DNA from: Marsupella aquatica
Taxonomy: Eukaryota > Plantae > Marchantiophyta
DNA length: 64,000 nt
Assembly: GCA_973895155.1 (NCBI GenBank)
Contig: OZ316899.1
Coordinates: 1,883,573-1,947,572 of the forward strand
Reading direction: 5' to 3'
Shown: piece after piece, positions 46,552 through 62,700 of the stretch
Numbering within the stretch: the stretch's first letter is position 1
Layout of the letters: every line of letters begins with the position of its first letter
Position numbers and translations under genes: made by a program
The notes under the pieces: model-generated
Databases searched by the model: none
The model's input: only the letters and a program-made list of their open reading frames with translations
What the model was told of the DNA's origin: nothing

Positions 46552-49457
46552 CGCGAGGCCATTGAAGGGGAATCTATCAGAGAAGATGACCCTGAAAATG
46601 ACAAATAGCCACCCAGGGAGGCTGAATTTTCAGACAACACCGACGGTATTGTAGATCCTCGAAAATGTCAAAAGATTGAAATAGAGCTAGGGAAGTTTCT
46701 AAACATTAGTAACCATATTACAGGTGAGTTAAGAGAGAAGTATGTTGACCTGTTGACTCAATACAAGGATGTTTTTGCGTGGAGTCACAAGGATCTTAAA
46801 GGAATACCACCCCATCTGGGTGAACACCGAATTGACTTGATAGAAGGAGCTGTACCAGTAAGACAGAGGCAATACCGCCTAAATCCTAAATACTCTATGT
46901 TGGTTAAAGAAGAGCTGGACAAATTAACAGAAGCGGGATTTATTTATCCTGTGCTTAGTAGTGATTGGGTCTCACCTATCGTCATTGTTCCTAAGAAACC
47001 TGGACCGGATGGGAAGCCTAAGATAAGGGTGTGTCAAGATTTTTGGAAACTTAATGCAGCCACCAGAAAAGATCATTACCCTCTACCTTTTATAGATTTA
47101 GTCCTTGATTTAGTTGCTTCTCATGAATTATATAGTTTCTTGGATGGATACTCTGGCTATAACCAGGTGTCAATCAGAGAGGAAGATCGTGACAAGACTA
47201 CCTTTACCACGGATTGGGGTACCTATGCTTTTCGTGTTATGCCCTTTGGTCTGTGCAATGCCCCTGGTACATTTCAACAAATCATGATGATCATCTTTCA
47301 GGATTTCCTCAGAATTTTTTTAGAGATTTTCATTGATGACTTTTGTGTATATGGAGCGGCCTTGAGACACCTTAACCATTTGCAACTGACGTTTCAAAGA
47401 TGCCGGGAGTCGCAATTATGCTTACATCCTGAGAAATGTTTCATCGGTATGAAGGAAGGTATTCTGCTAGGACATGTTATCTCACAAAGAGGAATCGAAG
47501 TGGATGCGGAGAAAGTTCGGATTATTCTGGCATTACACCCCCCTGGAAATTTGAAGGAGTTGCGAGGCTTCCTAGGCTATGTGGGGTATTATAGACGATT
47601 TATCCGGAAGTATGCTGACCTTGCCATGCCCTTAACTCAGCTCCTCAAGAAGGACACGGAATATGTGTGGACTGCAAACAGGCAAACAGCCTTTGAGGTT
47701 TTAAAAAACAAACTAACTGTTGCGCCCATTCTACAACCGCCGGATTGGCAGAAACCTTTTCATGTATATATTGATGCTTCAGCTTTTTGTGTGGGAGCTG
47801 CCTTAAGTCAACTGGATGATGAGAAGAAAGATCACCCTATATATTACGCCAGTAGGCAAATGAATAATGCTGAAAAAAATTATACGGTCACAGAGAGGGA
47901 GGCCTTAGCAGTCATTTTCTCTTGTAAAAAGTTCCGGCACTATCTTTTGGGTTATAAAACCATTTTCCACACGGATCATTCTTCTTTGAAATACCTAGTG
48001 AATCAGGCAGATTTAAGTGGGCGCATTGCTAGGTGGGTCCTTCTTTTACAAGAATATGATTATGAGGTACAGGTTCGAGCCGAGAAACACCATGAGAATG
48101 CAGACTTCCTATCCCGACTTCCTGGAGATCCTAGTGTTGAACCTTTGTCTGATCAATTTCCGGACGAGCAGCTATGGCATTTGGAGGGAGAAGACTCAAG
48201 GTACTTTGACATTGTTCAGATGCTCACTCATGGACTTTATCCACCAGGCTTGAATGCAGAAGAAAAAGCTGTTTTCCTATACAAAGTCGGACCGTATACT
48301 ATTGTGAGGGGTGTTTTATTTAAATTATTGCCAAATCAGAGACTTCACCGTTGCTTGGAAGCTCAAGAAGTTCCAAAGGTCATCTCAGCCTTACACACTG
48401 AAGCTTCCGGTGGACACTATGCCGTTAATACAACGGTTAAGAAAATTAAGGATGCTGGATTTTGGTGGCCAAGGACACTTATAACTACATTCAAAGCTGT
48501 GACCCTTGTCAACGAATAGGGAAGCCTACTGCAACATCAAAATGGCCTCTAACTCCCATTTTGCCTCTATCTCCGTTTGAAAAATGGGGAATAGACTTTA
48601 TTGGCCCCATTTCCCCTGCTGCTAGACGAAGTAGAAGCAGATATATCATTCTTGCTACAGACTACCTCACCAAATGGGTGGAGGCTAAGCATACTAGGAA
48701 GAATGACGCTGCCACAGCCGCCAATTTCTTATTTGAAAACATTATTACCAGGTATGGCTGCCCCTTGGAATTGGTAAGTGATCGAGGCCTGCACTTCCTT
48801 AATGAGACAATTGAGTTCATTACGGAGAAATATTTGATTAAGCATCGAAAGACCACCCCTTATAACCCCCGAGCTAACGGATTGACTGAAAGAGCTAATG
48901 GGTTAATGGGAAAAATATTGAATAAAATGGTGGAAGCACATAAAACGGATTGGGACATCAAACTCCACTCTGCTTTATGGGCTTACAGAACCGCAGAAAA
49001 GATTACTACCTTGTGAACCCCGTTCTACTTAACTTTTGGTATGCATAGTGTTACCCCCATTGAATTTGAACTACCTACTGAACGGATTCTGATCTCTGAG
49101 AGGGTTCCTGAACTTGATAGTTTCCACACTAGGTTGGAAATTCTGGATGAATTAGAAGAACATAGACTTCTAGCTTTACAGCATACCATTCAACAGCAGG
49201 ATAAACGGAAGATGTCCTATGATAAGAAGTTAAAAATACCGACACTACAGCCAGGAGATTTGGCTCTTGTGTATGACTCTAGGTATATGTTTTTCCCTGG
49301 GAAGCTGCACACTCATTGGATCGGCCCTTACAAAGTTGTTACTATATGGCCAAATGGATCCTTATCTTTGGAAACCTTGGATGGAGAACCCCTAGCAACA
49401 CGCATTAATGGTTCCAGGGTGAAGAAATATTATTTACCGCATTCTGAAGGCTTGTGA
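46552..49457 (+). pseudogene. pol: Pol (RT, RNase H, integrase) of the Athila-like element, disrupted
   Basis: RT (KDHYPLPFID, FLDGYSGYNQ, MPFGLCNAP, FIDDF), RNase H (IDASAF, EREALAV, TDHSSL) and integrase (WGIDFIGP, VSDRGLHF, NGLTERAN, HWIGPY). In frame with gag across two stops, with a frameshift near 48470-48500 and a TGA at 49014-49016. Confidence 0.93.
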
Positions 49458-49484: not shown

Positions 49485-50773
49485 TATGTAAGTCGTGGGT
49501 ATTTCCAAAATCATGAAGAAACTGAAAATTTTTAAATTTTTTAGGGGGTTTAACCTCTAATTGTTGATAACAGAACGGAGATAGCATTCTGTCTACAAGT
49601 TACGGTCCCCAAGTTTAAAGTAAGTTTACGAGTAAACTCCAGTTACGAGTTACGAGTTAGTAGTTACGAGTTACGGGGTTGCGACAGTATACTAGTTACG
49701 AGTATACTAGTTACGACTTACTAGTTAGGGCTTTACGAGTTGTGCCTTACGAGTTGGCGACCGATGATCGCGACGTCTTACGGCTACTTCCAACGGGACT
49801 TAGCAACGGGATGGCGAACGCGAATTGAAGAAAAGGCAAATTAGACTTCGGGCGCTCACTCCTAACTTAATTCCTGCCACCTCTGTTGATTCTACCAGCT
49901 TCCCCACTCCTTAGTGCACTCAACATAACGGATGAGAGCTATGGCAAACCTCGGCATTGATGAACAGTACCGAGTTGACACTCTGGCAATTCCTAAGAGC
50001 ATAGTCGCCCGAATTCCACCAGCGCCCGATAGCTATGCAAATTTACGGACTTCCTTACAGCAGCTAGGTTTGCAGCATCTACTTGTCGTTCCTTGGGAAG
50101 TAGAGCTCGACACATATTTGCAGGATTTTGTAAAGGGGTCAGTGCTTGCTCCTGAATTTCGACGGACTATTCGAGCTCGACCCAGCTTATGGACTGTGGA
50201 ACAAATTGCTTATGCCTTCCGCTGCCCTTCAGAAGGAGAAGGATTGTATTCAAAGAAGAAAGATTTATCTACACCTTACTTCTCTGGGACTCGCAATCTC
50301 ACCAATGGCTGGAATTTAACACAATGTATTTATCCAGATTTGAGAGTGCTTCTGGAATTTCTAGTACCCATTTTACACCCGAAGAAGCCAACCATCTGTC
50401 TAGTGGCTTTGGTGAATACAATTGTAGCCGCACACAGTGGATCTGTCCAGGTGAATTGGGCCCTACTAATTTTCAATGTGATGAAGGATCAGGTGAGGAC
50501 CATGAAGGCAGGTAGACCCACTCGTCTGCAGATTTATTTGTCTCAACTCTATCATGCTTATGATTGTTTATATCCAGAGGAGAAAACGGAAAGAGGGCTG
50601 CTCCTGATTGAGTTAGGCATTGAAGAAGACCTAAGTATGGAAGAACCAGTGGATGCTGTTCCCCTGGATTCTCATGATCAGAATGTGGATGCTGAGATGG
50701 AATTAGATAGGACACCTGCTCATAACTTAGAGCTGGTTTGACACCCTCTGCATAACGTGGTGTATTCGCCAAG

Positions 50774-51380
50774 TGTCGTGCGCATACATATCGCTACACA
50801 ACATACATCGCTTGTCACATACATCCAGACATAGTCACACTGCCACATCACAAATACAAGAGAATGGAATACAAGTGGAACTCATGTCCACACATGTCCA
50901 AAACCCACAATAATCTTCATACAATCGGCACAACGATCTCGGTCAACAATACCCCATCGATCCCGCACCGATCCGATCACACACGTATGTCAAGCCAACG
51001 CACCTTGCACTACTCAAGGAATCCACGTTACACAAGCGGAGCTCACAGCCACCATAGCCACACTCAAGCTCCTCTCTCTCCAAGGCTCAACATTGAAAGA
51101 TGACCTTTCAATGCCTCACAAGTGAGAAGTACCCTCTCACACAAACCTGACAGAACCTTATCGGCTCCAATAGCACTCATACCAAACGTACATACTCTAA
51201 TAGCACGATATACTACTACACTACTCAGAATGGTGTGACAGCTGTCGTGCGCATACATATCGCTACACAACATACATCGCTTGTCACATACATCCAGACA
51301 TAGTCACACTGCCACATCACAAATACAAGAGAATGGAATACAAGTGGAACTCATGTCCACACATGTCCAAAACCCACAAT
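50774..51380. repeat. Terminal repeat block X-Y-gc-X: X = 138 bp (50774-50911 and 51243-51380), Y = 329 bp (50912-51240, second copy 60037-60365)
   Basis: The X copies look identical and the Y copies differ at two positions seen. The Y/X junction is the palindrome GACAGCTGTC. A PPT-like AGGGGGGCG (minus strand) lies at 51381-51389. Confidence 0.9.
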
Positions 51381-51553
51381 CGCCCCCCTAGCTGGGAGTA
51401 AGGTCCCCTAACTCTAGCTAGCCATGAGTTCTACAAGGTTGATATACACCTTTTTAGGTGTGAAGATCAGGAGGCCGGGTGCAAGTGAGCCCCATCGATC
51501 ACCTACCTGCAATCCATATCTGCCAAGAGAACACAAATGATAACTAGTCGGCT

Positions 51554-54500
51554 TCACCGACACTGAGGACACAACCATGATCCACTAGGAATCACCTGCA
51601 ATGGTGGTGTCAAACATGACATGTGCCATCCTCTAGAACACTTATCACAAATCAACATAGTAGCTGCTCCCTGAGCAGATCCACACAACATACATTTCAA
51701 GCCAGCACGAACATGTGCCAAGCTTGGATCTACTGTACCATCAATGTTGGGAAGGTGACATGGTGCACAGTTGCGCACATGATCCTTCCAAACCATACCA
51801 TCGCGTCCCTCCAACATCAGGACACCAGAAGGCAACACTTCACGCACACGTAAGATTGTCCGGCCTGCGGTCACATCAAGTGTCGTGGGTGCTGTCTGCT
51901 GCAAATAAACATAATCACCAGGATGAAATCGTCGAATGCTTGCACAGTAACCTCCTCCACGAATAGTGGCATACCTCAAAGTATCACGATGTTGGGCAAT
52001 GGCAAGGTTGTCAAAAGCCATGGGCATCACTCTCTGAAATACCCGTGCTCTCTCTGAACACACCTTGACCCAAACATCAGGATCATCCAAGTTCACAACT
52101 GGTGCAGCATGACGACGAATAGCTGCTGGCAAATCTGGCTCTCTACCATAGAGCAAAAAGTAGGGTGAGAAGGATGCAAGTGATGCTTGCCGACTGAAAC
52201 GGTAGCCCATAGCTAACCAAGGTAGCTGGAGATCCCAATCTCCCAGATGACCAACCTGCAAGCCATACTTACGCAATCCTCTCTTCATAGTTTGCACAAC
52301 TCTCTCAGCTAATCCATCTGCCTCAGGATGATCACGAGAGGTAGTGCGATGATCAATCAGAGCTTGTTCACACAAACTCTCAAACTCTCCACGGAACTCA
52401 GTTCCTTGATCAGTCAACACCTCAGCTGGTGCTCCAAAATGACTGAGTACACGATCCAAAAATGTAGCAGCAACTCCTCCACTGGCTTTATCTAGCAACG
52501 CCACTAGCTCAATCCACTTGGAGAAGTGCTCCACCATGACCAAAACATACCGATTATGACGTTGGGTAAGAGGTAATGGACCAGCAAAATCCAAACTCCA
52601 ACGATATCCCAAACCCATGATCGGTAACGGGTGCAACTGGGAAGTGGGAGCATTAAATGATGCTCTCACTCTGTCACATACCACACACTTAGCTATCAAC
52701 TGCTGGACATGAGTGTGCATACCACGCCACCAATACTGCGTCTGCAACAAGCTGTAAGTGTGCTTCACACCAAAGTGACCCAACTCCTCGTGCGCATGTC
52801 GCACCAAATGTACTCGTTGTGATGGTTTTGGTACCACCAACATCCTACCATCATGCAGTACTCTCAAAAGATGGTTTCCCTCCCATCGAAACCTCTTGGC
52901 TCTCTGTAGAACCCTGTCACGTTCCTTGGCATCAACACTGCCAACAATAGAACTATTGCGCAGATATTCCAACACTCTCACATCATTGTGAATATCTTGT
53001 TGTCCAGAAGTTACCTCACCAACATCCACATCTGAAGACTCATCACCCACTCCATCCAATGAAGTAGAGTCCACAGATCCACTGTATGTTGGCACCCAAC
53101 AAAGAAAGGCAGATGCATGCCATCCTGGCACCATCTCCTTATCTGACTCATCATGCCATCTGGCTCCAGTCTCATCCTGCTGACTGGTACATGGATTGCG
53201 GCTTAATCCATCTGCATCCAAGTTCACTTTTCCAGGCCTATGCACCACCTGGAAATCATACTCCTGTAACAACAATGCCCATCGTGCAAGCTTCCCTGTA
53301 AGCTTATCAGACTCCATTAACCACTTAAGAGGCTGATGATCAGTGATCAAGGTGAAGGGGTTACCAAACAAGTAGCAACGAAAGTGTGCAACAGCCCACA
53401 CTGCTGCCAAACACTCTCCCTCATAAGAGCTATACTTAGCCTCTGCTGAATTGTTTGATCTACTGGCATAAGCCACAACAAACTCATTCCCCTCATCATC
53501 CTTCTGAGTCAGCACTGCTCCAAGTCCTACTCCACTCCAATCAGTGTGTAGCTGAAATGGTCTGCCTGAAATGGGTCTTCTCAAAATAGGGGATGATGCC
53601 AACCTTTGCTTCAACTCCTGAAAGGCATGCTCCTGGTCATCACCCCAAATCCATTCCTGACCCAACTTAGTGAGTATGGTCAAAGGTTTAGCAAGCTGGC
53701 TAAATCCTTTAACATACCTCCTGTAGTAGCTCGCCAATCCCAAGAATGCACGAACTCTACTCACATCAGTAGGACAAGGAATCTGTGTAATGGCCTCCAC
53801 TTTAGTCTGCTGTACACCCAATCCCCCTGGGTATATGGTGTGGCCCAAATACTCAATCTGGTCTTGGAAGAACTTACACTTGCTAGGATGGAGCTTCAAC
53901 CCATGTGCTCTCAATCTCTCCAACACAGTCTGCAAGTGCTGCTGATGTTCTTCCACAGTAGAAGAATAGACCAAAATATCATCAATATAACATCTGACAA
54001 AATCCAAACCTGCAAGGATTCGATCCATGACTCTCTGGAACTCAGCTGGTGCATTCTTCAACCCAAATGGTAAGAATAACCATTGATACAAACGATCTTT
54101 GCCATAAGAATCAATCCCCCAGAATGCTGTCTTGGACCTGTCAGCATGCCTAATTGGAAGCTGATGGTATCCTGCCCTCAGATCCAATGAACTGAAAACC
54201 TTTGCATGCCCCACAGCATCAAAGATCTCCTCAGGTGTGGGCATGGCATATCGATCAGATTTTGTCTGGCGATTAATAGGTCTGTAATCACCACACATGC
54301 GCCTATCTGTGTAATTGCCATGCACATCCTTCTTGGCTGGCATCACTGTGGCAGATGCATACTCCCCATATGAAATCTCCACCAATCCAGCCTCCAACAA
54401 ATCTTGAGTTCTACTTTGAATCAGAGCTCTCTCCATGTCACTATAACGGTATGGCCTACGAAAGATTGGCGCATCACTAGCCAATTCAATCTGAATACCA

Positions 54501-57500
54501 GGGCCCTTCAATGTCCCCAAATCCTTCATGCTGAATGCAAAACAATTCCAATAACTCTTCAGGAATCGATGCATGCGACGTCTCTCCTCCCCTGTTAACT
54601 TAGGGCCAAGCTGTGGTTCCCAATTCTCCACCAAATCCCTAATATCTCTTTGTAGGGTAGAAGAGATAGCCGATGATTGCTATTTAGCAGTAGATTGAGC
54701 AGTCCCTTCCTGCTCAACAATCTGTCCAGCCGCCAATCCTGTCATAGGTCCATGGACTGTCTGCTCGCCCCCAGCTGTGGTCAATACTGTCTTAGTGGAC
54801 CGCAAGCTCACCAAGGGACAATCAGTAATTCCGGCAGAGCGCATCCGCAACTGTTCAGCTACTCCCAAGCTGATAATCCAAGTCAAACAATTCAAATCCA
54901 TTGCTTGACCAAGAACCTGGCGCCGCAAACCCTCTGACACAGAGGCAACTGCAGTGGTGCCAGTAAAAAATCCCATAGCACGCTCTCTCTCATCAGCAGT
55001 AGGCTCCACTAACTGCTGGAGAGCTGTGTCCCATACAAGTCCAGGGCCACCTGCTCTGAATGCATATGAAGTAGAGTGGCTTACAAGAGTGGGTAATGCA
55101 CAACGTGGGCACCCAACTGCATTGACCATTGCCAATGGAGGTCTATCAGGTTGGGTCACACCCTGTGCACGACGCCCTGGATCCAAAATATCATCCACCA
55201 CTAAGGCTGGTGAGCGTGGAATGCTGTCAAATGCGCGCTTCAGCACCTCACATGGGATCAAATTAGTCTACCATAAGCGTGGACGATGTGCACGAGAACC
55301 CACATGTGCAGCATCCAATAACACAGCAGGTCCAATCCAAGACCTCACCTGGTGAACACTGGCAACAATCCGACTACGATCATCACCTAACAATGGCACA
55401 TTCTCCAAAATGTATGCTGGAGACTGTGTCTGATGTAGCTGGAGGTGACGCAGCACCCGTAACATCTCCCAAAACAATGCAGAGCGTGGATCATGAAGTC
55501 CATGCCCAATGCCAGCTCTAGATTGGCCCTGACATGGCCAACCAGCAATCACCAAATCAATGGGGCCAACACGATGTAGATGATCCGCCCCCAACAATGA
55601 AATATCAGCAGGTAGTGCATGCTGATAACCACGAACAGCATCCACTGGCAGCAACTATGGATATCTATCCACCAACATAGCCACATGTCGCAATGAGACC
55701 CTCCGTGTTGTCTCATCTGTCTCCACATACAAATAACGACGCACAGGAATTCCTGCCTGAAGAACAGCAGCCAATCCAGTGCTAATCCCACCAAAAAGAT
55801 CCAACAAACAAATACCCTCCGGTGGATACTGCCAAGCAATAGGAGTGGTATCCAATGGTGAAAGAGTCACAGGTCCATCTGCAAGAGACTGCTCTGCTCC
55901 TGACTGTGGTGTAAAAGCATGACGCCATGCATCATGTACCAATCGTGCTGCTGCCTGTGGCAAGGCTTGTGCAGTGCCCCACACTGGTGGCACAACACTG
56001 CCAACAGGTAATCCTCGCATGATGTGCTCCTCATGAGACTCCTCCAATGGTGGAACATCGGCTGCATGCGCATTACCCTCAATCAAATCATCAGGTCCAG
56101 CAATTACACCACTGAATGCTGCCAAAGACAATGGTGTGGATTTAGGGCCTCCCATAGGTCCACTAAATCTCACTGGCAATTTGCTCAATCGAGCATCTCC
56201 TGACTGCCAATCAGGTCTATATGACACTGATTCCTCCCAAAAATCAAGAATAAATCCCATGGGGTAGAGCACTGTACATCCCACCAACACATCATATGAC
56301 TCTGCCTTAGTCAGAATAGCCCGCGCCTGTATCTGTGAGCTATCTGTGGTATGACCTTCCTGAATCCTCAAATCAAGTGGTCTCCTGGTGATATGCTGTG
56401 TAGGTGTAGGTCCCCCCAATGAAGTCTGAATGGGAAAGGGACAATCCTCCAAATCCTCTGGACGCAATCCCAATCCACGTATGGCAGACTTCCCCAACAT
56501 CAAGGGCTGAGCACCAGTATCCAGTAACACTCTCTCTGGCTGGTATACTGCTCCAGAAGGCCCAAATAATCGGAAGATACCACTCCGATTATCCAATGAC
56601 ACAACACTAGGTTTAAACCTAGTCCTCTCAAATGCAGGGCGTGCTGGTAAATCCACCAACCTCACTGCTGCTGCATGCCATGTCTCACTAGTAGCAGTAG
56701 GTGGCATGGTCTTCACTACATCAACACTGCAAGTTGCTTCTGCATGGGAAGCAACCACTGGAGTGTCCTCACAGAGTGTAGCTGCCAATCTGAACACTTC
56801 TGCAGGACCAACTCCCAAGTTCAGCATGTCTGTCACTGAAAATAATGGGGTGCGTACTATGGCAATAGCCGCCCCCAGCAAGGTACCTGTCATCCCTGCT
56901 GCATCACTACCTAATTTTGCCAACTTACCCACATCAGGGTTTGTCCGAACCGGGTTCATAGAGGCAGTCTGAATTGTCTCTGACAATGTAAAAGACTGAG
57001 GAAGCTTTGTCTGCCGACGTGCATCCCCCCTTTGTGGATCTAACTCCACTACTGCTCCTCGGGGCTCAAGAGCTTTGGCTGCCCCACGTATCAAAGCTGC
57101 TGATGCATCAATATGTGCAGTGCCACACATGAATCCCATGGTGGCAAGGTCTCCATCAGCTCCATAAGATGTGGAAGGACCATGGGATGTGGAAGGTCCA
57201 TAGGATGTAGATGCCCCATCACCAGAATTAGGTCTCACCTGGGAACTAGCCATGGCAGCTAGTTGTTGCTCCAATTGAGCAATCTTAGCATCCTTTGGAT
57301 CTATGGTTACAGCAGGGGCAGCGTCACCTCCCTGTCTCCTTGCATGTGGCATGCCACGACCACGTCCACCACCTCTACCTCCTCCTCCTCTTCCCTGATC
57401 ATGTGTACGGGATCCTCCTCTTCGTAACTCAGGGTGGAGTGAGAAACACCTATCCTTGGTGTGTCCAGGAGCTCCACAGTGATCACACTGTCGCTGATCA

Positions 57501-58669
57501 GGCGCTGATGCTCCCCCTGATCCTCTATGATCTGGACAATATCTCTGTGCATGATCCCCACCACAGGTCCAACATCCTGACTGCTGTCCAGCATAAGAGG
57601 GCACAGGTCTCTGGCTGGTAGACTCTCGTGCAGTAGGCTTCTCCCTCTGGCTCTTCCGTGCAGTAGGCTGTGGTGTGGATGTAGATGCAGCCTTTGGTGC
57701 TTCCTTGGCAAATCCGAAAGTCACCACCTTCTCATTCACCATATTGAGCTCAATGCGCTCAGAAAGGGTGAAAACAACTGCTAATGTGGGATCTGCATCC
57801 CTAAGCAGAGTGACATCTCTCACTCTGCGTCGCAATTCTCTGTCCAGAATTGCATACCAAAACTGGACTGCCTGAGCCTCTGTCACTCCCTTGGTGACAG
57901 TGATCAATCTGCGCATACGTGTGTATGCCTCACGTAGGCTCTCTCCAGTCTTGCGTTGGAACTCCTGAAGACCCTTCAACTTATCAGTTCTCACACCCTG
58001 AAAGTTCTGCTTCAGTACCTCAAAGAATTCCACCACAGGATTAAATGCTGGCGCAACTCCAGTTCCTGTCACAATCACACCGGCAGGAGTAGTGGTGGAT
58101 GCTGCTGGAGTGCTGCTGGTGGATGGTGTGCCACTCTGGCTAGTGCTGCTAGAAGAAGCAGCAGCTGTGGCAATTGGTTGGGCAGCCGCACTAGTGCCAT
58201 AGGTGATGGACACATAATTAGGCGACCAATGCTGCCTCCATGCCTCAATCTCAACCAAATGAGCCTTCCGAAACTCATGGTAGTCATCCATGGGTGGCCC
58301 CTCCAAATGCTGGAATAATCCCTTCCATGCCATGAAAGGGGTAAACAACGTGACATTACGCAATGTCTGCATATCACACCACGTATCAAACTCCTGGATG
58401 AAGTCATCCAGATCAATTGTGCCAACTGCACCAGAGTATCGTCGTGGGCCCTTTGTAGCCCCGTACATCTCGTCCATATCCCACAACAAAGGTGCAACCA
58501 CCTGATGATGAGGAGAACTGGTCACTGAGTCCTCATCAGAATCACTGTCTGAAGCTGCACTGCTGATTGCTACCAATGCCGCTGGCCGAAACTGTGCCCC
58601 ACTCCGAGTGAAACCGGTCCGTCGTCCATCGGGTAATCCAGCAGCACCAGAAGAATCCGTGGTGACCAA
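51554..58669 (-). pseudogene. Gag-PR-DNMT-RT-RNaseH-integrase-PHD polyprotein (2371 codons, three in-frame TAG stops)
   Basis: ORFs 55655-58669, 55268-55654, 54680-55261 and 51554-54634 are all in the same frame. Knuckles CWTCGGDHAQRYC and CDHCGAPGHTKDRC, protease LLDTGAQ, RT YIDDIL, RH HTDWSG/EGECLA/TDHQPL, integrase HAHEELGH..CVVC/SLDFAG/LTDQG/AERVVQ, GPY/F FHPGDYV, and PHD CMLC...CDKCSRGWHMSC...WLCPQC. Confidence 0.93.
54860..55825 (-). other. C5-cytosine DNA methyltransferase domain within the polyprotein
   Basis: Motif I LDLFGGISTG, II YVETD, IV GWPCQGQSRAG (catalytic PC), VI ILENV, VIII AHRPRLW, IX ERERAMGF and X VLGQAMD, in canonical order. Confidence 0.93.
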
Positions 58670-59204
58670 CCCTAACCTAATCTATGTGCTAACCCTAAGG
58701 GCAATCTATCCCTGTCAGCACCACAAGCACTCACCATGGTGTGTTGGGCATCACTCCAACATCACCAAGAGAGAAATACACAACACACTAGAGTGTCCAG
58801 TTGCAAACCCGGATCACTCCTATGGAATCAAGCACCCACACGAAACTAACATGGCGCATAAACAGGAAACATGTGTGAAGAGGATCTAGAAACAAGAATG
58901 GATACCATTCAACTCTCCACACAAAAGCAAATGCAAATCAATATGACAATGTGCATAAGGTTCAAGGAAGAGCCTTCATAATAGGCTTCACAATGGCACT
59001 CCAATATTGTAGATGAGAACCAAGGCAAAATTGGTTCAATCTGTGAGTCTAGATGGACTCATAAGTATCAAAAACCCTCTAACAGCCTCTGATTTGGCCT
59101 AGAATAGGCCTCTAAACAAACCGGGAAGTGTATAAAGCCCCCTGGCGCTTGAATCTAAACAACAAGTTGTCAAAGCTTGTGTGTACACAAGGTGGGATGA
59201 GAAC

Positions 59205-59440
59205 TTGCCAGTTAAGCGCTCGCGGTTGGGAATAGCCCCAGGATGGGTGACCTCCTCGCGCTCGACCTTGTGCCTCCCCTCGCGCTCACGGCCCGGAATA
59301 GCCCCGGGATGGGTGACCTCGACCTCGCGCCTGCCTGCGCTCGTGATGGGTGACTTCGCGCTCGCGGTTGGGAGCACTTTCGGGATGGGTGACCTCACGC
59401 GTTGCCTCGCGCGAGCACTTTCGGGATGGGTGACCTCGTG
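59205..59440. repeat. CG-rich degenerate repeats with core GATGGGTGACYTC (5 copies) in the 5' leader of the DNMT-Gypsy
   Basis: Cores near 59242, 59308, 59344, 59385 and 59425, embedded in CGCGCTCGCG-rich sequence. Confidence 0.8.
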
Positions 59441-59671
59441 CACCTCACACCTGACCCCAAAAATGACTACTTCCTTCACGAAAAGCTCCCGAAAACTGTC
59501 GATTTCCTTCATGAAAAATGCAGCCCTTCCACAGAACTGGCAGCAGCTTGATTCAACACCTTTGACCCTCGTTTCTTTCACTGAAACGATGATACCGTCG
59601 CACGGGGCATTGGCAGCTCCGTTCCTTCAGGAAAAGAGCCGTCGCTTCACCTGTGCCTTGCCAACATCGTC

Positions 59672-59763
59672 CAACAATAGCCGGCAATCAGATCTGAAGC
59701 CCCACAGTAGCCGACAATCAGATCTGAAGCCTCACAGTAGCCGGCAATCGGATCTGAAGTCTC
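59672..59763. repeat. 30-bp tandem repeat, three copies
   Basis: CACAGTAGCCGRCAATCRGATCTGAAGYCY repeated three times. Confidence 0.9.
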
Positions 59764-62700
59764 ACGGATTGACTTCCACTGTCCAACATCTACTCAACAT
59801 TCGCTTTCCTCCACAAATCATCAATCGACCTCCAACTCAAAACCTGTCACCAATCACAGATCTGTACATCGATCGGGAAGCAGGCCGATCGGACAACAAC
59901 GATACAGGTCAAGATACCAATGATCTGTTCGATAACAACACACGATCCGAGCTACCACGAACCATCGACAACTCAATCAATCGAACTTCTGTCCGCACAG
60001 TCCGTACAACAGATTTCGAATGTGATCTTTCAATGTAATCTCCATACAATCGGCACAACGATCTCGGTCAACAATACCCCATCGATCCCGCACCGATCCG
60101 ATCACACACGTATGTCAAGCCAACGCACCTTGCACTACTCAAGGAATCCACGTTACACAAGCGGAGCTCACAGCCACCATAGCCACACTCAAGCTCCTCT
60201 CTCTCCAAGGCTCAACATTGAAAGATGACCTTTCAATGCCTCACAAGTGAGAAGTACCCTCTCACACAAACCTGATAGAACCTTATCGGCTCCAATAGCA
60301 CTCATACCAAACGTACATACTCTAATAGCACGATATACTACTACACTACTCAGAATGGTGTGACACAAGAGTTAATATGAGAGATCAACCTGGAGCTGGA
60401 AAAGACAGAGATTCTCCTGAGCAATCAGCCGACGTTGCTGAACTGGCTCTTGCAACTGTCAACCTAAGGACCAACTCCTCCACTCCTTCGAAGGCAGAGT
60501 CGAATCAGCAGCTTATTGATAAGTTGACATCTCTCCTCAGTTGCAGTAATGATGGACTATATGACGCTGTTAATAATTTGAGAATGGAGGCTGTTAGTTT
60601 GAGATCACCATTTCATGATCAGCTAAGTCCTGTCAGAATGACCTCTCCCCCAAGAGAACCAGCACCAATGGAGTTTGTGATCTGTACTCCTGTCACTGTA
60701 CACCCCCTCCCCTAGAAACAAGTGAGCCTATTCCAGTAACAGATAGTATCAGCTGTGTGGCCATTGTGGATGACTTGTTAGAACTACTACAGTGTGAACC
60801 TCGACAGATAGCATCTGTGGTCCGCAACTTGATCCAACAATGTCCAACTGCTAGTCCTACTCCTAGCCCAGGTTCGCAACCTTACAGCCCTGATTCCAAC
60901 TACAAACCCACAGAAGGACCCACCTACAATCGGTCACAATATGAGCACCCTTTTGACAGAAAAGATCTACCTGAAGACTCTGATCCACCCTCAGATGGTG
61001 AAACTTATAGATCTTATGATAATTCTCTTGAGTCATCCCCAAGGCAGGGATTTGAAGATGTTGATACTGCCTTAAGATCCAATCCAGACTTAGTAGCAGT
61101 TGTCACTTCATCTACTCAAACACCTCGGAATGCTACTATCGAAAGCAGGTACCCTAGACGTCCTGAGTCAGAAGTACACAGGTATGCCACCACTTGCAAA
61201 ATAATGCAGGCCAACAGACCACCGGTTGGAGAGTTCTGGAGATACTACTATCTAAAGAAGACTGAGGCAAGCTACATCTTTGATCTTAGGTGTCTTGGTA
61301 CTTCTAGAGTGGAAATGGCACAATTTGATGAGTTCTGGATTGACTCAATATACTTTCGGCCTATTCTTGCTATGATGCTACTCCAAGGTGATGTAGAGGT
61401 AGAGGATTCAGACTTAGTTCTGGCATACTTTGGAAACTTTGCAGCCTATGCCTTGGATTTTGTGGTTTCCTTCCTGATGCAGAGCAAGAAGTCTACTACT
61501 CTACAACACGATTACATACCACAAGGACCTAAGGTTACCCTTGTTTCAACCAGTACATTGGCTGAGAAACAGAGGATCTGGAATAATGTCACTTCTCAGA
61601 CTCTAGCTGAATTCAACCGATATTTCAGAGATGTCAGATGGAGACTTCGACCCTTCTATTCCAGGATGATGAGTAGTGATGAGTTCCTGTACCATTATTC
61701 CCAAGTATATGCTGCTACCTGCAACAACTATGATGTGATCAGGATGTACAGAGAAGCCCTTCGTATTGATTCATGTTATTTGATGAAGAGGATGCCTTTG
61801 ATGTATCCTGAGAGACAACTGAGATGCCTACCATACTCCAGAGGATCCCCACGCCAAGCTGAACTGATGGAGGTTACTCAGAACCGAGTTGTTACCCTTG
61901 TGGAGTTGCTGGAACCAGACGACATCCGACAGCAAGCTTGAAGAAGTCTTTAAGTGTTTTTAGTTAGTTTTTAGAGTAGTGCATCTTATCTGATTTTTAG
62001 AAATGCATTCTAGAGCTTTGGAAGCTGTCATACTTCTTTAGTGTATAGTCTGTACCTAGGAAAACCACCCGGCAAAATCTCAGAGTTTTCTGACTTATAG
62101 TTAGGAAGTTAAAAATAGTTGAATTCATCAAGTCTTTACTTTACCGCGATTACGAGTTACGACTTAGCTTTTACTAGTTACTAGTTTCCGATTACGAGTT
62201 CCGATAGACAGCCGATTACGAGTTAATAGTTACTAGTTACGAGTTCATACTTAGCCATTTTTCCGGCTTTTCACTTACTGAATCGCCATTTTAAAATTTT
62301 GAGGGGTATGAAGAGGCATGTCTCTTCGACCCTGTGACCTCTTACTCTGTAGATTTTTACTATAAGACCCCTCCACCACTAGTGTAGATTATGGTAAAGT
62401 TAAGCAATTTTTGCCTTTCCTTGGTGTTCTGCCAGTTGATCATGAATGTTAAGAGTTCGAGATCAAGCTTGACACCAGGAGAAGACTTTCCTCCTTCTTG
62501 TGGTTTAATCCTTTGAATAAATCATGGGAAGTAAAATTCCAGTTGTGTAAATCTTATGAGATCTGATGACAGATTCCTCTTTGGTGACTCATTACAATCT
62601 CCTGGGTTCTTCGAGTTAACTCACTGAGTTTAAGTCTTATTTGAAATTGATGGATTTTCTTTCATGTTATTTAGTACCATCTAAATGTTGAAGTAGCTAC

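Follow-up and report, generated by a model that had tools for sequence, protein, structure and literature searches.

A probable Gypsy-DNMT3 retrotransposon in a liverwort-type genome: a broken DNA methyltransferase and a conserved, putatively leaky stop codon

It is a puzzle why some retrotransposons encode the very type of enzyme by which they are usually silenced, and a case of this kind is found in a 64,000-nucleotide stretch of the Marsupella aquatica contig OZ316899.1 (positions 1,883,573 to 1,947,572; called the window below, with all positions counted from its first letter). A 9.6 kb Ty3/Gypsy element lies on the minus strand of the window, running from 60365 to 50774, and its polyprotein includes a cytosine DNA methyltransferase (DNMT). 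The locus raises the question of whether the DNMT is a genuine part of the element and, if it is, whether it can still be made, in which product, and to what end. Very probably the element is a Gypsy-DNMT3 retrotransposon of a liverwort-type genome, in a copy that inserted recently and has since become defective.

The coding part of the element is a single minus-strand frame of 2372 codons, which runs from 58669 to 51554 without a frameshift and ends in a TGA at 51554-51556. It encodes, in this order, gag, a protease, the DNMT, reverse transcriptase (RT), RNase H, an integrase and a C-terminal PHD finger. A Ty3/Gypsy polyprotein with a DNMT between protease and RT had been proposed in an earlier reading of the letters, made without database searches (the sequence-only reading), and the Pfam domains are found in just that order. 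The succession of RT, RNase H and DDE integrase is that of Ty3/Gypsy elements (Pfam RVT_1, RT_RNaseH, Integrase_H2C2 and rve). The frame contains the following features:

58669, minus strand: opening of the frame; the first ATG is at 58475-58477
57446-57574, minus strand: gag, with two CCHC zinc knuckles, seen in the translation
56393-56539, minus strand: aspartic protease, identified by its DTG motif (LLDTGAQ, 56507-56527) and a weak match under the Pfam cut-off (PF13650, E 0.009)
54800-55819, minus strand: DNMT3-like C5 cytosine methyltransferase domain (PF00145, E 3.8e-12 on the middle piece; also by profile search and alignment)
53834-54310, minus strand: reverse transcriptase, with YIDD at 53978-53989 (PF00078, RVT_1, E 1e-34)
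53258-53647, minus strand: RNase H (PF17917/PF17919, E 7e-37)
52325-52825, minus strand: integrase, with an H2C2 zinc domain and a DDE core (PF17921, E 4e-15; PF00665, rve, E 1e-12)
51560-51694, minus strand: PHD finger (C4HC3) at the integrase C-terminus, in the last 45 residues (PF00628, E 1.1e-10)

The DNMT motifs I to X are in frame and in the normal, non-rearranged order, as had been predicted. Motif I is at 55775-55801, motif IV (AGWPCQG, with the catalytic Pro-Cys) at 55526-55546, motif VI (ENV) at 55394-55411, motif VIII at 55271-55300, motif IX at 54968-54994 and motif X at 54890-54913. When a profile of the family's DNMT was compared with solved structures, the best match was DNMT3A (E 1e-25), followed by DNMT3C and DNMT3B (E 4e-23 to 4e-21), plant DRM (E 4e-15, across the region that its rearranged motif order leaves alignable) and M.HhaI (E 7e-9). 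DNMT3A/B outrank DRM by 10 orders of magnitude in this ranking of the profile against PDB entries. The domain resembles the catalytic domain of animal DNMT3A/3B (E 1e-25 to 1e-21) in its motif order and in the conservation of motifs I, IV, VI, VIII, IX and X. Unlike the animal enzymes, it is embedded in a retrotransposon polyprotein, has a motif IV of the form GWPCQ (GWECQ in some relatives), and has no adjacent PWWP or ADD domain, neither being found by Pfam in the 1004-residue upstream piece.

A single copy could not by itself exclude that the DNMT was captured only once, that the assembly is chimeric here, or that a host DNMT3 gene happens to lie beside a retrotransposon. No support for any of these was found, and they are refuted by related loci that carry the DNMT at the same place. 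The DNMT is in frame between protease and RT in the window and in all ten loci that were fetched for comparison (L001-L010). Three of these loci come from Marchantia, and the others from Calypogeia, from two further NCBI assemblies and from contigs of ENA and Logan. The DNMT is present in about 60 database proteins too. An accidental origin is thus extremely improbable. The sequence-only reading had allowed that the DNMT might be missing from other copies or free of selection; it was found at the same place in more than ten loci, and the family bears the marks of purifying selection described below.

The relatives also show which family the element belongs to. A protein search with the piece extending from RT through integrase to the PHD finger (RT-INT-PHD) returned 2259 relatives at E below 1e-20, and, the window's own proteins being absent from the collection, the best hits to them are 69-78% identical. 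Identities to the RT-INT-PHD query are as follows:

Calypogeia fissa, P0006: 78%
Marchantia polymorpha, Mp_2g26090, with PF00145: 77%
Marchantia polymorpha, MARPO_0091s0058, with PF00145: 65%
Riccia sorocarpa, P0033: 74%
Closterium, several proteins, some with PF00145: about 38-49%
Klebsormidium nitens, P0062, with a PHD finger (PF00628): 41%
Tetraselmis striata, P0083, P0084 and P0096: about 38%

PF00145, RT and PHD occur together in Marchantia, Closterium and many environmental contigs, and RT-INT relatives are present in Calypogeia, Riccia and Klebsormidium. The K. nitens protein matches over 98% of RT-INT-PHD (E 4e-237). At its locus (L011) the DNMT profile matches directly upstream of RT, with independent E values of 2e-60 and 3e-18, and a pair of Y repeats, of the kind described below, follows pol. 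The homology of RT-INT-PHD, together with the DNMT upstream of it in K. nitens, places the window element in the published Gypsy-DNMT3 family, as the sequence-only reading had suspected. This family was first described as KnitGypsy-Dnmt3 from Klebsormidium nitens (de Mendoza et al. 2018, PMC5890265). Both the algal element and that of the window have Ty3/Gypsy domains, with a DNMT3-like domain of non-rearranged motif order ahead of RT and a PHD finger at the integrase C-terminus. They also share split direct repeats and, at the level of the family, purifying selection on the DNMT. They differ in host, which is an alga in one case and a liverwort-type land plant in the other, and in the position of the DNMT: in KnitGypsy-Dnmt3 it lies within the Pol polyprotein open reading frame (ORF) (PMC5890265), whereas in the liverwort clade gag, protease and DNMT are divided from RT, RNase H, integrase and PHD by a conserved stop of the form TAG-CAR-YYA. 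The text of PMC5890265 does not mention a PHD finger, a target duplication or a junction palindrome.

At the DNA level the window element is 68-69% identical to the Marchantia and Calypogeia copies through the DNMT and 72-73% in pol. A search with the DNMT region of an uninterrupted ORF1 found about a dozen annotated Marchantia proteins, as well as Sphagnum fallax P0155, in which the DNMT is fragmentary and without motif IV. Judged from these database sequences, land plants do have the family: it occurs in Marchantia polymorpha, Calypogeia fissa and Riccia sorocarpa, and Sphagnum retains remnants of it. This bears out the proposal that the family extends to land plants. The DNMT profile also matches, over profile positions 112-334, the three Gypsy proteins of the chlorophyte Tetraselmis striata listed above. 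With the Tetraselmis and Sphagnum matches taken into account, the family may have an earlier origin or a broader range than streptophyte algae and liverworts would suggest. In a tree of RT-INT sequences the window copy is sister to the pair formed by Calypogeia and Marchantia (100/100); all rows form one ingroup, and the deep forks, including the position of K. nitens, are unsupported. The element was also found in air and biocrust metagenomes by a search of sequencing runs. No paper on this family in land plants, on its PHD finger or on its stop codon was found in the searchable literature, and a preprint (10.64898/2026.05.21.726589), in the portion accessible, speaks only of "streptophytes (Gypsy-DNMT3)". 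The element is of a known kind, the occurrence of which in liverworts appears to be absent from the searchable literature.

The DNMT had been called complete. This is not so in the window copy, the frame of which contains three internal stops, all of them TAG; the first two are inside the DNMT and the third is at its border with RT:

55655-55657, minus strand: in-frame TAG between motifs I and IV, in the non-leaky context TAG TTG CTG; a sense codon in all aligned relatives
55268-55270, minus strand: in-frame TAG at the end of motif VIII, in the non-leaky context TAG ACT AAT; a sense codon in all aligned relatives and private to this copy
54674-54682, minus strand: conserved stop TAG CAA TCA at the DNMT/RT border (the TAG itself at 54680-54682), in the leaky-stop context UAG-CAR-YYA

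The DNMT of this copy is broken by the first two. At either of them translation would stop ahead of RT, which would leave this copy unable to make a pol of its own. The stop at 55268-55270 is private, because every contig of four public sequencing runs has a different letter at 55269, its middle position; this comparison was made for that stop, and the one at 55655-55657 was compared through the aligned relatives. In Calypogeia copy L002 motif VI is KNV in place of the family's ENV, and a second in-frame TAG is found in its integrase region; this copy is likewise decaying.

The insertion is recent, in line with the recent activity that the sequence-only reading had deduced from the near-identical repeats. 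The terminal repeats are 99.4-100% identical, there is no frameshift, and in the best sequencing run 1445 of the 4947 contigs that match the element are at least 99% alike, all of which points to recent activity of the family. The best runs contain thousands of element contigs, about 30% of them at least 99% alike, and the copy number is accordingly high. The differences between copies in these runs are mostly transitions. With about 0.3% of change expected per copy, roughly one nonsense change would be expected in 7.1 kb. The two stops could have arisen by decay once the copy had inserted, or could have come from an RNA that was already defective and was copied with the help of other elements. 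The observed/expected ratio of CpG is 0.35 in the frame (51554-58669) and 0.56 in the rest of the window, a depletion that fits long-term CG methylation of the family without proving it.

The third stop is of another nature. It lies about 20 codons ahead of the first conserved motif on the RT side, in a poorly conserved linker. The border position was read in each of the ten fetched loci, with the following result:

window copy: TAG CAA TCA
L001, Marchantia polymorpha: TAG CAA CCA
L008, Marchantia polymorpha, chromosome 4: TAG CAA CAA
L002, Calypogeia fissa: TAG CAA CCA
L003 and L004, two other NCBI assemblies: TAG CAA CCA
L005, ENA contig: TAG CAA CCA
L010, Logan contig: TAG CAA CCA
L006, Logan contig: TAG CAG TTA
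L007, ENA contig: TAG CAG TTA
L009, ENA contig: TGA CGT TTA

A stop is present at the border in all ten loci, in eight of them as TAG-CAR-YYA. The stop of L009 is in frame and retains the C that follows it. CARYYA is the consensus context of leaky stops in plants and tobamoviruses, and the context in tobacco mosaic virus (TMV) is TAGCAATTA (PMC5397192). The border stop resembles the type I leaky stop of tobamoviruses in the stop codon itself, in the six-base downstream consensus and in having a plant host. Unlike the viral stop, which interrupts a replicase, it belongs to a retrotransposon, where it stands not at a gag/pol boundary but between DNMT and RT, and is known here from sequence.

It might be argued that all three TAGs are products of simple decay, the border stop being an inherited defect and pol being expressed in some other way or not at all. 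All three stops are indeed TAG, and the nine-nucleotide motif TAGCARYYA is not rare by itself, occurring four times in the window against 4.07 expected. The case for a leaky stop is built on the conservation of the position, not on the occurrence of the motif. The border stop recurs in all ten loci of a clade whose lineages are only 48-70% identical in the DNMT, and in five of them (L003, L004, L007, L008 and L010) it is the sole interruption of an otherwise open frame of about 2320-2500 codons. The residues that flank it are wholly different between loci, and the codon after Gln specifies Ser, Pro or Leu, while the six bases downstream of the stop remain CAR-YYA. Many database ORFs end or begin exactly at the border stop: ORF1-type proteins have 1228-1451 residues and contain PF00145, and ORF2-type proteins have about 1030-1045 residues and extend from RT to PHD. 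Among the variants listed from the contigs of the four sequencing runs, none that is well supported falls at 54674-54682. The two stops inside the DNMT, by comparison, are in non-leaky contexts, and one of them is missing from all other copies read. Decay as the origin of all three stops is therefore improbable.

The border stop is probably a programmed leaky stop, by which gag-protease-DNMT would be made in abundance and RT-RNase H-integrase-PHD as a minor readthrough product. The main product would be Gag-protease-DNMT, and the readthrough product would continue through RT, RNase H and integrase to the PHD finger. Several observations weigh against such programming. L008 (TAG-CAA-CAA) and L009 (TGA-CGT-TTA) deviate from TAG-CAR-YYA, and the motif is found in the window at the frequency expected by chance, as given above. 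In more distant relatives, including Closterium and many environmental sequences, DNMT and RT are fused without a stop, so the family in general can do without the border stop. Readthrough is predicted here from sequence, and no RNA sequencing run containing the element is on record. In the RT-INT tree all stop-bearing rows fall into one well-supported clade (100/99). This clade also includes a sister subclade of three rows, and in one of the three DNMT and RT are known to be fused.

The window copy excepted, the DNMT appears from its pattern of substitutions to be under purifying selection at the family level. In five copies compared with that of the window, the DNMT is 48-70% identical, the linkers on either side of it only 9-44%, and RT, RNase H and integrase 69-85%. 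The proportion of differing nonsynonymous sites in the DNMT (pN) is 0.21-0.40 across copies, against about 0.7-0.85 for synonymous sites (pS), which are saturated. The ratio of the corresponding rates (dN/dS) is 0.1-0.22 at the family level where it could be computed, in agreement with the Ka/Ks below 0.2 published for the DNMT of the Klebsormidium element (PMC5890265). The residues required for catalysis are also largely kept. Among 54 full-length DNMT domains the motif IV Cys is present in 47 (as Pro-Cys in 34 and Glu-Cys in 13), the Glu-Asn of motif VI in 50, and AHRxR of motif VIII in 49. The 13 relatives with Glu-Cys have GWECQ in motif IV, and the liverwort clade retains Pro-Cys. In these respects the conservation of the domain looks like that of an enzyme retained for catalysis.

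Whether the DNMT is an active de novo methyltransferase, acting on the element's own new DNA or on its surroundings, is a matter on which the sequences leave the chances about even. Self-methylation of an element's new DNA was proposed for dinoflagellate DIRS elements by the authors who described the Klebsormidium family (PMC5890265). Two points limit the case for activity. The dN/dS values are rough, because the synonymous sites are saturated and the correction of dS fails for many pairs. In addition, the DNMT domain of the Klebsormidium element produced no methylation in its one published assay, which was made in yeast, a result that its authors considered inconclusive, because human DNMT3B also failed in that system (PMC5890265). 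The domain might instead have been retained for a role other than DNA methylation: as a DNA- or RNA-binding module of the particle, as a decoy for silencing factors of the host, or as an RNA methyltransferase. The negative yeast result would suit such a role, as would the replacement of Pro-Cys by Glu-Cys in 13 of the 54 relatives and the presence of the DNMT in the abundant Gag-side product, where a stoichiometric function would be expected to reside. However, the yeast result was inconclusive, given the failure of human DNMT3B. Most members, moreover, keep the S-adenosylmethionine-binding motif I as well as the Cys of catalysis, the Glu of motif VI and the Arg residues of motif VIII, which would be unusual for a purely structural domain. 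A non-methylating role is thus rather unlikely.

The sequence-only reading had placed a PHD finger at the integrase C-terminus, where chromoviruses have a chromodomain, and this was confirmed: no chromodomain was found by Pfam in the frame, and the PHD finger occupies its place. The best solved relatives of the finger are CHD4 PHD2, DPF3, ATXR5, KDM5A/B PHD1, PHF21A, UHRF1 and AIRE (E 5e-16 to 1e-9). PHD fingers of these types are mostly readers of the unmodified or non-K4-methylated histone H3 tail. Readers with a K4me3 cage carry a Trp two residues ahead of the His ligand; the finger of the element has none there. The C4HC3 pattern and the tail ...PPL...P.G.W.CP.C are kept in 67 sequences, comprising 62 relatives, the window copy and four loci. 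Other retrotransposons also encode PHD fingers, namely CR1-like long interspersed nuclear elements (Kapitonov & Jurka 2003) and REM1 of Chlamydomonas (Perez-Alegre 2005), which, as cited in PMC6673714, belong to other element classes or families.

The element resembles chromoviruses in having a chromatin-reader module fused to the C-terminus of a Gypsy integrase, the module being a PHD finger instead of a chromodomain. This fusion argues for a role in tethering integration, as is likely for the chromodomain. By analogy, the PHD finger might tether the integrase to a state of the histone H3 tail and so bias the choice of landing sites, a proposal that is as easily wrong as right. Weighing against it, the first loop of the finger contains acidic residues in distant relatives and Gly, Ala or Gln in the liverwort clade; owing to this difference the ligand is not callable from sequence. 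The PHD finger and the DNMT had further been proposed to pair a reader of histones with a writer of methylation. This pairing holds at the level of the element rather than of a single mature protein, for the two domains are about 1000 residues and one conserved stop codon apart.

The ends of the element pose a separate problem. The repeats were described in the sequence-only reading as near-identical terminal repeats. Near-identical they are, X1 and X2 differing at 2 of 330 positions and Y1 and Y2 being the same at all 138; they are, however, split direct repeats and not simple long terminal repeats (LTRs). In the orientation of the element the layout is X1, a leader of about 1.4 kb, the coding frame, a polypurine-like run, Y1, the dinucleotide GC, X2 and Y2:

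50774-60365, minus strand: whole retrotransposon, 9592 bp, with the ends 5'-TGTC...GACA-3'; repeats and termini were read directly
60366-60369, minus strand: target-site duplication, 5' copy, CTTG on the element strand, the same four bases at both ends
60036-60365, minus strand: repeat X1, 5' terminal, 330 bp, identical to X2 at 328/330 positions
51383-51389, minus strand: polypurine-tract-like AGGGGGG directly 5' of Y1, kept as TAGGGGGGCG in the window, Calypogeia and Marchantia
51243-51380, minus strand: repeat Y1, 138 bp, 100% identical to Y2
51237-51246, minus strand: internal junction palindrome GACA-GC-TGTC, formed by the end of Y1 and the start of X2, identical in three liverwort species
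50911-51240, minus strand: repeat X2
50774-50911, minus strand: repeat Y2, 3' terminal, 138 bp
50770-50773, minus strand: target-site duplication, 3' copy, CTTG

The split arrangement X-internal-Y-X-Y is found in the window and in the Calypogeia and Marchantia copies. The Calypogeia copy and the copy on Marchantia chromosome 4 also have the polypurine run and the GACA-GC-TGTC junction, and are flanked by 4-bp target duplications of their own, GTCA and GGTT, respectively. The Marchantia chromosome 4 copy (L008, Mp_4g09160) has split repeats that are 99-100% identical, is flanked by its 4-bp duplication and has no stop in its frame other than that at the border, which suggests recent activity of the family in Marchantia. 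The junction palindrome is a perfect 10-bp GACAGCTGTC, in which two element termini stand head to tail with a two-base spacer, GC. In the window copy, L002 and L008 this Y1/X2 junction resembles a built-in copy of a circle or end-to-end junction.

A repeat layout of this kind, written A1-internal-B1-A2-B2, is that of PAT-like DIRS elements, and the legend of Fig. 4c in PMC5890265 describes the Klebsormidium element as having a DIRS-like repeat structure with Gypsy domains. The element might on this ground be taken for a DIRS/PAT-like retrotransposon that moves by means of a tyrosine recombinase. However, no tyrosine recombinase was found by Pfam in the element, which encodes a DDE integrase with an H2C2 zinc domain instead; the order RT-RNase H-integrase and the homologues are those of Ty3/Gypsy. 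Moreover, the TG..CA ends and the 4-bp target duplications, seen in three species, show that the copies were inserted by a DDE integrase and not by a tyrosine recombinase. Movement by recombinase is thus highly improbable, and insertion by the encoded integrase is preferred. The standard LTR scheme does not account for a reverse transcription that yields the form X-internal-Y-X-Y. Speculatively, the two ends could be joined in an intermediate that integrase then opens at the palindrome, giving rise both to this form and to the 4-bp duplication. No TGG-starting match to a tRNA primer-binding site was seen beside repeat X1, and no search was made beyond that place.

The leader contains, at 59240-59480 on the minus strand, loose tandem copies of a unit that includes GAGGTCACCCATCCCG; short tandem arrays are likewise present in the leaders of L003 and L008. 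When the flanks were joined across the empty site, as a test for insertion into an ORF, no long frame was obtained, and the flanking ORFs at 49932-50741 and 60757-61941 have no Pfam match. A fragment of the integrase core of another Gypsy element (PF00665, E 1.7e-9) is situated at 48462-49016 on the plus strand, opposite to that of the DNMT element and 1.8 kb from its 3' end.

What is new here is, first, the conserved and probably leaky stop that would place the DNMT on the Gag side, together with the broken DNMT of this copy and, second, two features of the split repeats seen in three species, namely target duplications of the integrase type and the junction palindrome. Klebsormidium has been the only streptophyte example in the searchable papers, and the activity of its enzyme could not be demonstrated. 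The window copy is itself defective and one of many, but the family is alive in liverworts, and uninterrupted copies with near-identical repeats are present in Marchantia polymorpha, a tractable plant for which a methylome and chromatin maps are available. From the conserved, probably leaky stop one can predict the set of proteins produced and their relative amounts, and split repeats with integrase-type ends are something that the standard model of LTR replication would have to explain. These points make the puzzle more accessible to experiment. As a tentative and, on present evidence, unlikely proposal, the liverwort branch may have moved its DNMT to the Gag side of a leaky stop, so that the enzyme would be made in Gag-like amounts, and may be copied by way of an intermediate with joined ends. 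Made on the Gag side, the DNMT might enter the particles and mark the new DNA, or the chromatin nearby, before or at integration. If this proposal is true, the liverworts would harbor a Gypsy element whose replication cycle and epigenetic tool kit are unlike the textbook LTR scheme, and which could be studied in Marchantia.

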